A stretch of DNA of 60,438 nucleotides from Macrostomum lignano. Taxonomy: Eukaryota. Position numbers and translations under genes: made by a program. Where the stretch lies: contig NIVC01001254.1 in the NCBI GenBank assembly GCA_002269645.1, positions 1 to 60,438 of the forward strand, given 5' to 3'. Below, one piece after another: positions 16,301 to 18,942 of this stretch (the stretch's first letter is position 1; the number at the start of each line of letters is the position of its first letter). The notes beneath the pieces were generated by a model. It searched no databases. It saw nothing but the letters and a program-made list of their open reading frames with translations, and was not told the origin of the DNA.

Positions 16301-18942
16301 AAGGTGGCTCTTTAATGTTTGACATTGTGGCTCTTTAATATTTGACAAGGTGGCTCTTTAATGTTTAAAATGGTGGCTCTTTAATTTTCGAAATGGTGGC
16401 TGTTTTATGTTTGACATGGTGGCTCTTTAATGTTCGACATGGTGGCTCTTTAATGTTCTTAATGGTGTCTGTTTTATGTTTGACCTGGCGGCTCTTTAAT
16501 GTTTGACATGGTGGCTTTTTAATGTTCGACATGGTGGCTCTTTTAGGTTTGAAATGGTAACTCTTGTATGTTTGATATGGTGGCTCTTTTATGTTCGACA
16601 TGGTGGCTCTTTAATGTTTGACATTGTGGCTCTTTAATGTTTGAAATGGTGGCTCTTTAATGTTTCGACATGGTGGCTCTTTAATGTTGAGAATTTTGTG
16701 TTTTTTAACGTGTTTTAATAAAAAAAACATTTTTCACCACTAAGATTCGAACCAAGGTCGCTACATTAGCATTCCAGTCTGTTTGCATCCGGCTATCTCT
16801 TTTCAATTGGAGAACATGACTTGTGGCCCCTATAATTCAATACTTATAGCAAGTCGGTAAGAGTAAAAAGTTATGACATAATCAATTTCTCAGTCAGCCA
16901 GTATCAGTCTCAATTCAAGTTAGCAATATGGTTACGCAATTTCAATGAAGTCTTGTGTGCGTTTCTGTGGCACTGTTTTCACCTTGTTGTGATGCAATCT
17001 TTATCACAATCGTAATTCAGCCAGTCAGTTTTTTCTCTAGCATTCTTACAATGCATTTCAAGTCAAAAATTTGGCTTGACCTTTGCAAAAAAGCATGTTT
17101 TTCGAATATTTAATCCCTTTAACATTGAGCAATTTCTTAGCCAAGATACATGTACCGTCCCAGGAACATTTCTGATCGAATGGTGCAAGTTTGAAGAAAA
17201 TCGGTTGAGCCATTTTTTCTGAAATCTATCGCATAGCTAGTTAGTTACAGACATTTCATTTTTAGTATATAGGATTGGCGTGCCCAGAAACACAATGGCG
17301 TCCCACTGGTCCATGTACTTCATCTGGCCGCGAAACTTCACTGCATTCGCGGTCATGCTGGACATTCGCTTCCGGGACACCTCTGCAGAGTTGACGGTAA
17401 TGCTTTGGTGTAGCATTGGTGTAAAAAACACAGACTAAAAGTAAATTTTATCTGCTTCTTTAAAATTCTTCAAAAGGAATCCCAGTAAAAGAATGTGAGC
17501 ATGGTGTTGACAGCTACTCTCGTTCGAGTGGAAACTGAGGACCGCTATAAGGTACAATTAAACTGTAATTTCTAAGGGTCCTTGGTGTAAACTTGAATTC
17601 ACTAACACATCAAAAATGATTTTGAGACCTAGCACTTACCTCGCTTCTTCTTTCCGTCCTTTTTCTCGACAACCGCAATTTCGAACACGTTGTTTGTGTG
17701 AAGCATCACCTGTTAGCATGTAAAACAATGACGACAATAAAAGCAAGGTAATATACAGATCGGTAAACTGTGCAATTAAATTTTCTTGCAGTGCCACCGG
17801 GAAAATTATGGGGAGAAAATGCAGTTCGTTGTTTGCAGTGAAACGGATTGAGAAACCTTATACGAGAGTAAAAGAGCTGAAAAGAGCAGTCTATATGCAT
17901 TTGTAACTGCACACCAAAGTCCACCACTGAAGGAGAGCGAACCAGTTACTTAGTCTAATGGACAGACAGAGCAAGTGAGTAGTAATTCGAAGCAGAAAAA
18001 TGAAATTTGTTTGTTTAATTCTGGCTGAAGGCAAATGAAGCGGATTAGTATTCTAATAGGATTCGCGTCTATCATACTGTTTGCGGAGCTTCGAGCTAAA
18101 AAGATGACGGACAAAGCTTCGGTTAACTTGGTATGGCTTTATCAGCATCATCTAGATAGGTGCCGATGTACACTTGAGCTTACAGCGTCCCACGTAAACT
18201 CGATGAGCGGTCGCACTAGCACGAAAACTTCGTGCATCAGAGAGCCCTGGATGCCCGGCACTGCCTGCTGGGTGGCCCGGCCGCATTTGACCACCTTGAG
18301 GCCGCGGTTGAAGACAATGTTGAACGGGAACACTTCGAAAAACACTTCAGACGGCACCGGCATGTGATCGTCGCGCGCCTCGTAGCTTTTATTATCAAAG
18401 TGCAATCGCATCACATAGTTCCACACGCTTTCTTCGTTGGTCTCATTGACCATCTCAACAGTCATCTTAGTGTTGAAGTACACCTTGGCGATCTCAGTGA
18501 TCATGCCCTGCACGTAGCTGATGAAACCGACTCGACGGCTTCGGTACTGCAAGGTGATGCCGGTCCGGCTCTCGTTCACGCAGAAAAATGATGGCGGCTT
18601 CAGTTTGGGATAAGTGAAGCGTAGGTACTCGTGAAGATTGTCCAGGCCGTTTAGAAAATCGCGCAAATCCCGGCCAAGCACCTTAAGAACAGCGTCATAG
18701 TTGTACTGGCTGAGGAAGTTCATGAAGTAGCGCCCGTTCTCATTCATGAGCTCGTCGAGAGGTATGTTGACTACTTTCGATGCGGACTCCGCCAAGCGGG
18801 TAATCGTGCCCTCAGTGTACACCTCGTGCGGATCGAAGCTCAACTCCTCGACCTCGGCCATCTTGAGGATGCGCTCCCACATGTCCTCACCGTAGCGAAC
18901 AAGAACCATGGACCTGAAGCCTTCTATCAATAAGCCGTACAT
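7305..18942 (-). CDS. Gyc88E: Atypical soluble guanylyl cyclase beta (H-NOX, PAS/HNOBA, coiled coil, cyclase), Gyc88E-like; 8 exons, about 664 aa if the Helitron insertion is removed
   Basis: Exons (- strand): 18942-18184, 17709-17640, 17382-17275 (plus T at 10143), 9945-9816, 9745-9292, 8477-8368, 8003-7911, 7574-7305. All junctions are GT-AG with consistent phases; sum is 1995 nt. Motifs: [80 protein letters not shown]. The symbol denotes the closest recognised subfamily. Confidence 0.93.
7581..7725. repeat. (TAG)n trinucleotide microsatellite in the last cyclase intron
   Basis: Pure AGT repeat ending a few bases from the 3' splice site of exon 8. Confidence 0.97.
10385..10815. repeat. GATAGCAAGCATCC-type minisatellite in Helitron 2
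   Basis: Degenerate tandem copies; same family as 13950-14350 and 6545-6645. Confidence 0.9.
10930..13135. repeat. 24-bp minisatellite (GTGCAATAATCCTTGGTTTATCAA)n
   Basis: About 2.2 kb tandem array; source of the DKPRIIAL / LHLINQGL / SSAIILGL pseudo-ORFs. Confidence 0.97.
13203..13262 (-). other. tRNA-derived segment (B-box-like GGTTCGAATC) inside Helitron 2
   Basis: - strand reads ...AGACTGCTAATGCAGCGACCTAGGTTCGAATCT, resembling anticodon arm plus T-arm of a tRNA; no convincing acceptor stem. Confidence 0.45.
13950..14350. repeat. GATAGCAAGCATCCCCCA minisatellite in Helitron 1
   Basis: Tandem 17-18-bp copies. Confidence 0.93.
14420..16690. repeat. 23-bp minisatellite (ACATGGTGGCTCTTTAATGTTTG)n
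   Basis: About 2.3 kb array with higher-order variants; source of the MSNIKEPP pseudo-ORFs. Confidence 0.96.
16741..16797 (-). other. tRNA-derived segment (B-box-like GGTTCGAATC) inside Helitron 1
   Basis: - strand TAGCCGGATGCAAACAGACTGGAATGCTAATGTAGCGACCTTGGTTCGAATCTTA, homologous to 13203-13262. Confidence 0.4.

Follow-up and report, generated by a model that had tools for sequence, protein, structure and literature searches.

A Helitron insertion at the last base of exon 3 in a Gyc-88E-like guanylyl cyclase gene of Macrostomum lignano, probably recent and with a truncated or degraded main product

Scaffold NIVC01001254.1 of the Macrostomum lignano assembly Mlig_3_7 (GCA_002269645.1), analysed here over its complete length of 60,438 bp (hereafter, the window), carries on its minus strand a gene for an atypical soluble guanylyl cyclase (sGC) of the Gyc-88E/GCY-31-like type, running from 18942 to 7305. 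The gene is interrupted between the A and the T that end exon 3 (CCAA^T/GTAAGA; caret, insertion point; slash, exon–intron boundary here and in the splice sites below). The inserted DNA is a canonical Helitron, in which every structural hallmark that can be tested is present. We consider it likely that a non-autonomous, satellite-carrying Helitron inserted recently into one copy of this Gyc-88E-like gene, and that the main product of the interrupted copy is a truncated or degraded one. The evidence on transcript use is indirect, and it favours read-through into the element over splicing at a cryptic donor near the element's 5′ end.

Along the minus strand, the junction consists of GGCACGCCAA (exon 3), TCCTATATACTAAAAATGAAAT (the first 22 nt of the element), and GTCTGTAACTAACTAG. 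The 5′ terminus TC is joined to the host A (GCCAA/TCCTATATAC, slash at the element boundary), and the 3′ terminus CTAG is joined to the host T (GATTGCTAG/T GTAAGA), with the boundary at 10144/10143. The subterminal hairpin (10177-10159) has a predicted folding energy of -13.2 kcal/mol (z -3.4), and 0 of 200 shuffled sequences fold as well. The hairpin is followed by ACTAGATTGCTAG and then by T/GTAAGA, and is located ~200 nt upstream of the acceptor of the natural intron. Together, the hairpin and CTAGATTGCTAG represent the 3′ terminus. The window contains a second, partial copy of the same family, which shares ~330 bp with the element: the 18-mer array, unique sequence, and the conserved hairpin. 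The similarity between the two copies ends exactly at CACTAGATTGCTAG/T, and the flanks beyond are unrelated.

No target-site duplication is present at the insertion, no inverted pair involves either terminus of the element, and no RepHel open reading frame (ORF) is present within it. All ORFs of at least 80 aa in the element are translated tandem arrays, indicating that the element is non-autonomous. The hallmarks of canonical Helitrons are a 5′-TC, a CTRR-3′, a subterminal palindrome, insertion between A and T, and the absence of duplications and terminal inverted repeats (PMC4778049). An earlier note on this DNA had called the element a Helitron, and the TC and CTAG ends, the hairpin, the A^T site, and the lack of a duplication and of terminal inverted repeats bear this out.

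Other assignments of the inserted DNA were considered and rejected. A first CTAG occurs at 10155-10152, but with this as the 3′ end ATTGCTA would remain in the exon and the peptide would read GTP-NCY-MRD, a junction found in no orthologue; moreover, the similarity to the second copy continues past it, through ATTGCTAG. A natural non-canonical or U12-type intron after CCAAT (CC...AG) is not supported, as neither an ATATCC nor a GTATCC box is present and the Helitron ends account for the whole sequence. An element of the terminal-inverted-repeat or long-terminal-repeat type is excluded by the absence of terminal inverted repeats, terminal direct repeats, and a target duplication. The last 14 nt of the element (ACTAGATTGCTAG with the host T; 10144-10157, minus strand) form a second small hairpin, CTAG-ATTG-CTAG, which places the 3′ cleavage site within a palindrome holding an internal duplicate of CTAG.

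The natural donor of exon 3, T/GTAAGA (10143/10142), is intact and now lies 7,131 bp downstream, in the context AGT/GTAAGA. Because the element starts with T, the last base of exon 3 is restored and the exon sequence is kept to its final base. The 3′ end of the element is at 10144 and not at the acceptor at 9946, and the natural donor and the 197-nt intron (10142..9946) survive downstream of it. In silico removal of 17274..10144 gives GGC ACG CCA AT/GTAAGAC...(197 nt)...GAGCAG/T ATG CGC GAC, a phase-2 intron inside the Ile codon of GTPI/MRD. An intron of the same position and phase is present in the orthologues of Schistosoma rodhaini (ACACCAAT/GTAAGT...ACAG/TATGCGT) and Cichlidogyrus casuarinus (CCTAT/GTGAGC...TAG/AATGCGA), and the exon end ACNCCAAT/GT is common to M. 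lignano and S. rodhaini. The peptide junction GTP(I/V/Q)-(M/L)xD, without extra residues, is found in all orthologues, in two M. lignano paralogues, and in the deposited M. lignano model A0A1I8GB62.

When the exons are joined without the element, they form an open 664-aa ORF. The 664-aa model contains the Pfam domains HNOB (2-163), HNOBA (195-394), and Guanylate_cyc (class III; 405-586), and its matches to PF07700, PF07701, and PF00211 are all far above the cut-offs. Its best matches are Gyc-88E-like and GCY-31-like proteins across animals, at 50-60% identity. Human sGC beta-1 (6jt0_B) is aligned to it over residues 1-557 (E value 5e-101), and the proximal heme-ligand His and the Y-x-S-x-R heme-contact motif align with those of the human subunit. 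Toward the end of the gene, a pure (TAC)n microsatellite of ~140 bp (7582-7722, minus strand) closes intron 7 and comes to within 7 nt of the exon 8 acceptor (TACTACTTTTCAG/TCC).

Transcripts that leave exon 3 without splicing meet the stop codon that the earlier note had pointed out, the TAG at 17239-17237, and encode exactly 324 aa, the last 11 of which come from the element. This product is identical to GenBank PAA70266.1 (BOX15_Mlig013889g1, 324 aa), annotated on this scaffold. For the Mlig_3_7 annotation, STAR alignments were assembled by StringTie and TACO, the result was combined with mapped de novo transcripts, and TransDecoder called the ORFs (PMC5730564). Since the annotation is built from RNA sequencing, a transcript model running from exon 3 into the element underlies PAA70266.1. 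The 324-aa product is the longest recorded at the locus in this RNA-guided annotation, which calls no coding sequence (CDS) in exons 4-8.

The 324-aa product retains the full HNOB domain (2-163) and profile positions 2-144 of the 216 of HNOBA. It had been described before as a heme domain plus a partial PAS with no catalytic domain. The loss of the cyclase stands, but the PAS is whole, through its last strand FLGTPI. As judged from the domain profile and a structure model, the truncation would remove the coiled-coil part of HNOBA and the cyclase, not the PAS fold. A possible early poly(A) signal, ATTAAA, is located at 17114, 125 nt past the stop, and an annotated 627-aa 'gene' lies further inside the element on the same strand as the cyclase. 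The ATTAAA and the separate internal 'gene' are compatible with, and no proof of, a transcript boundary inside the element.

Such a transcript, polyadenylated in the element, might escape decay and yield a stable, heme-binding 324-aa H-NOX/PAS protein that works as a sensor on its own or as a dominant-negative partner for full-length cyclase subunits. The protein is the annotated CDS, it keeps the full HNOB and the whole PAS-like fold with the heme-contact residues that align with human beta-1, and both the ATTAAA and a boundary between the two same-strand 'genes' fit this scenario. However, a TransDecoder CDS call says nothing on stability, and the 11 tail residues derived from the element are arbitrary. 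In addition, given how recent the insertion is (the copies are identical), selection for such a role cannot be deduced. We regard a functional truncated isoform as very unlikely, and a regulator-like role of the 324-aa protein is pure speculation.

The second possible product depends on a cryptic donor. As reported previously, the first 22 nt of the element are directly followed on the minus strand by GTCTGT at 17252, and ending exon 3 at 17253 and joining it to 9945 keeps the frame, adding 21 nt and 7 aa. The added residues read LYTKNEI, and the ORF has 2016 nt. Two GTs occur before the stop, at 17252 and 17248, and only the one at 17252 keeps the frame. The resulting junction peptide is exactly that of UniProt A0A1I8H7Y0 (559 aa). 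Donor scoring had been proposed with a species-trained model; it was carried out here with a generic matrix, in which AAT/GTCTGT scores -2.05, below all seven natural donors of the gene (0.33 to 7.6). Its C at +3 and T at +4 are seen in 0 of the 7 natural donors. Of the 236 GTs that lie between exon 3 and the displaced natural donor, the site ranks 67th.

In the AlphaFold2 model of A0A1I8H7Y0, which is of moderate quality (mean predicted local distance difference test score, pLDDT, 66.6), the last PAS strand (294-302, FLGTPI) precedes a short helix (313-319) and the long helix of the coiled coil (323-358). LYTKNEI corresponds to residues 303-309 in a low-confidence loop (pLDDT <50 over 305-311). 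The 7-residue insertion would accordingly be placed by the model in the linker between the PAS and the coiled coil, at about residue 326/327 of human sGC beta-1. In sGC, the heme signal passes through this linker (cryo-EM structures 6jt0 and 6pas).

One way to keep the cyclase would be efficient use of the 17252 donor with the acceptor at 9946, removing the entire Helitron together with the old 197-nt intron as a single 7,307-nt intron and yielding a working 671-aa cyclase with LYTKNEI. The site is the first GT after the exon body and the sole frame-keeping GT before the stop, A0A1I8H7Y0 has exactly the 17253^9945 junction, and the modelled loop at the position equivalent to human residue ~326/327 breaks no secondary-structure element. 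On the other side stand the low donor score with its unmatched +3 and +4 bases, the lack of a long product here in the RNA-guided annotation, the moderate quality of the structure model, and the possibility that seven residues in a signal-transmitting linker are not neutral. A0A1I8H7Y0 itself is a predicted model. As 17252 is the only frame-keeping site, a gene predictor would choose it for the frame alone, and the model is therefore not independent evidence; the A0A1I8 models also hold evident read-through artefacts. A query with 175 aa from exons 1-5 for protein fragments across the junction returned only proteins of up to 305 aa, none above 77% identity, and is uninformative; exact look-ups of the 664-aa and 671-aa full-length models gave no entry. 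We consider efficient rescue by exonization unlikely. The fuller proposal, in which the Helitron 5′ end works as a donor that lengthens the intron from 197 nt to 7.3 kb and the exon by 21 nt and gives a functional cyclase with seven new linker residues, seems to us more doubtful still. If true, it would be a case of intron expansion and exon-boundary sliding by a rolling-circle transposon caught in the act, and it would be more interesting should the 5′ ends of the family generally carry this donor.

UniProt A0A1I8GB62 (532 aa) reads GTPIMRD, the uninterrupted junction. It is identical to A0A1I8H7Y0 except for the seven residues and the model ends. Elsewhere, the A0A1I8 models match the window, including tails translated from introns 5 and 6. 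The A0A1I8 series presumably comes from the earlier ML2 assembly via WormBase ParaSite. As far as the protein model A0A1I8GB62 indicates, an undisrupted, near-identical copy of the gene appears to exist in the species. A near-identical uninterrupted copy indicates that the insertion is recent, and with such a copy exonization is not required to keep the gene alive. Both A0A1I8 models also use an upstream acceptor in intron 4 (ACGCAG/GTCCTA; 9746-9775, minus strand), which adds 30 nt in the coiled-coil region. The residues of this extension are absent from orthologues, and it probably stems from a prediction error or from a minor alternative acceptor.

The existence of a model with an uninterrupted junction could also mean that the 7.1-kb repeat block was misjoined into the gene during long-read assembly, in a locus that in truth has no interruption. 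The genome of M. lignano is rich in repeats and in part duplicated, the assembly is redundant, and the DV1 line has duplicated chromosomes (PMC5730564). However, the peptide across the exon 3–element junction occurs in two separately deposited annotations, PAA70266.1 and A0A1I8H7Y0. In addition, both ends are base-precise Helitron junctions around a perfectly reconstructable splice site, which a misjoin would not yield. An assembly artefact is extremely improbable.

The recent Helitron insertion with a truncated or degraded main product would proceed as follows. The Helitron entered the AT dinucleotide with which exon 3 ends, pushing the conserved phase-2 donor 7,131 bp downstream. RNA polymerase would run from exon 3 into the element, and the frame would close after 11 element codons. 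Transcripts would either terminate within the AT-rich element or extend through it as far as the old donor and splice there; the natural donor can still be joined to exon 4 in read-through transcripts, which carry the premature stop, and these would be likely targets of decay. This copy probably makes little or no cyclase. The species would tolerate the loss, as it also has a copy that is uninterrupted and otherwise identical. Splicing at the GT at 17252 could restore a 671-aa protein that carries seven extra residues in the loop between the PAS and the coiled coil, but the site is weak and would be a minor route at best.

Several points weigh against this interpretation. The uninterrupted copy, which may be an allele or a duplicate, is evidenced by a protein model. 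The Mlig_3_7 annotation lacks a full-length protein of this gene, so the intact copy may be missing from that assembly. The donor matrix is generic, with approximate frequencies, and is not species-trained. With the TACO setting --isoform-frac 0.75, a real but minor cryptic-donor isoform would be lost, and STAR was allowed 1000 multi-mappings, so coverage in the repeat-rich element may stem from other copies (PMC5730564).

Table 1 Positions of the cyclase gene, the inserted Helitron, and related features in the window
Feature	Position	Strand	Remarks
Guanylyl cyclase gene	7305..18942	-	exon joins read from sequence
Cyclase exons 1-3	18942-18184, 17709-17640, 17382-17275(+T)	-	sequence reading
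Host part of exon 3	17275..17382	-	ends GGCACGCCAA; final exon base T now from the first base of the element
Cyclase exons 4-8	9945-9816, 9745-9292, 8477-8368, 8003-7911, 7574-7305	-	sequence reading
Exon 4	9816..9945	-	begins T ATG CGC GAC (I MRD)
Non-autonomous Helitron, 7,131 bp	10144..17274	-	5′-TC, 3′-CTAG, between host A and T
First 22 nt of element (TCCTATATACTAAAAATGAAAT)	17253..17274	-	exonized if cryptic donor used: net +21 nt, LYTKNEI
Candidate cryptic donor GTCTGT	17247..17252	-	GT at 17252-17251
In-frame TAG ending read-through	17237..17239	-	coincides with end of GenBank CDS 18942..17237
23-mer x 96 tandem array	14483..16688	.	internal to element
18-mer array (GCAAGCATCCCCCAGATA)	13953..14355	.	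second, degenerate block 10447-10742
24-mer x 91 tandem array	10940..13133	.	internal to element
GC-rich subterminal hairpin (GGC.CCCC GAA GGGG.GCC)	10159..10177	-	15 nt before 3′ end
Helitron 3′ terminus CTAG	10144..10147	-	second-copy similarity stops exactly here
Host T (10143) and natural 197-nt phase-2 intron	9946..10143	-	donor GTAAGA 10142-10137, acceptor AG 9947-9946
Second, partial copy of same Helitron family, 3′ region	6545..6850	+	18-mer array, ~200 bp, hairpin, CTAG, then T at 6851

About 70% of the interior of the element consists of three tandem arrays, built from a 24-mer, a 23-mer, and an 18-mer. The 627-aa 'protein' in the GenBank annotation is a single-exon model (12864..10981, minus strand) made purely of 24-mer repeat units. 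It is almost certainly an annotation artefact, though it implies a transcript model across the array. A query with the array-encoded ORF for further copies of the element gave no scoring matches, and an exact look-up of the 627-aa sequence gave no entry.

The copies of the family that were seen number two, both in this window. The 18-mer of the element recurs in the second copy at 6545-6658. The first 22-mer of the element (17274..17253) occurs once in the window, where no second 5′ end of the family is found, either at up to 3 mismatches or by local alignment. Metagenome contigs scanned for the 3′ end of the element contained nothing, as expected for a flatworm element. A literature search for M. 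lignano Helitrons found no paper, and the supplement of PMC5730564 mentions neither Helitron nor Mlig013889. The second copy is located ~455 bp past the stop codon of the cyclase and is oriented opposite to the gene; it may fall in the 3′ untranslated region or directly after it.

Two intronless annotated genes neighbour the cyclase. One (22302-24791, minus strand) encodes an 829-aa SLC26-type sulfate transporter with Sulfate_transp and STAS domains, and the other (20965-21459, plus strand) encodes a 164-aa Tctex-1 dynein light chain. The scaffold also carries at least 15 unrelated tandem arrays with units of 4 to 102 bp, for example at 27943-28990, 33511-34350, 37208-37690, 40869-41527, and 42443-43058. 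One of them, TCCTC x 210, accounts for the extreme GC and AT skew at 28-30 kb. The abundance of arrays is consistent with the 15% of simple or tandem repeats reported for the M. lignano genome.

The results bear mainly on annotation. PAA70266.1 is a transposon-truncated product and not a natural cyclase-less H-NOX protein, the LYTKNEI of A0A1I8H7Y0 is derived from the Helitron, and the 627-aa 'protein' is a translated satellite. The element represents a canonical flatworm Helitron family with base-precise ends, and its insertion is very recent and possibly polymorphic. In M. lignano lines, the interrupted gene is a candidate for a naturally occurring null or hypomorphic copy of a cyclase that senses O2/NO. 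The event is of an ordinary, well-known kind and leaves the current understanding of Helitrons, splicing, and guanylyl cyclases unchanged; in practice, it serves mostly to correct three database entries and to define the ends of a flatworm Helitron family.

Compared with the HelibatN families and the ends defined by Helraiser (PMC4778049), the M. lignano element has the same TC and CTAG ends, the same insertion between A and T that leaves no target duplication, the same lack of terminal inverted repeats, the same subterminal 3′ palindrome 10-20 nt from the end, and, as a non-autonomous copy, no transposase. Only the 3′ end is shared by the second copy, a pattern often seen where Helitron 3′ or 5′ ends diversify. 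The M. lignano element differs in that ~70% of its interior consists of tandem arrays and in that no RepHel partner is identified within the window.

Insertions of transposons in or near exons are well described as causes of read-through truncation, cryptic splice sites, and exonization (PMC6240941). The M. lignano case shares with them an early stop and a possible cryptic donor, giving truncated or insertion-bearing gene models. Its geometry is unusually tidy: the element sits at the last exon base, its T restores the exon, the donor remains intact 7.1 kb away, and a single GT is in frame. Helitron insertions in maize genes, such as sh2-7527, reportedly offer a further case for comparison.

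The gene has the same layout of H-NOX, HNOBA (PAS and coiled coil), and cyclase as the atypical O2/NO-sensing cyclases (Drosophila Gyc-88E and the C. elegans GCY-31/35 group), but the M. lignano copy is interrupted by the element. In mammals, splice variants of sGC subunits that are truncated at the C terminus or bear insertions have been reported as inactive or dominant-negative. Like them, the 324-aa product loses the catalytic domain and keeps the N-terminal sensor and dimerisation regions. However, the mammalian variants arise by regulated alternative splicing of intact genes, whereas the M. lignano truncation is a transposon by-product in one gene copy.

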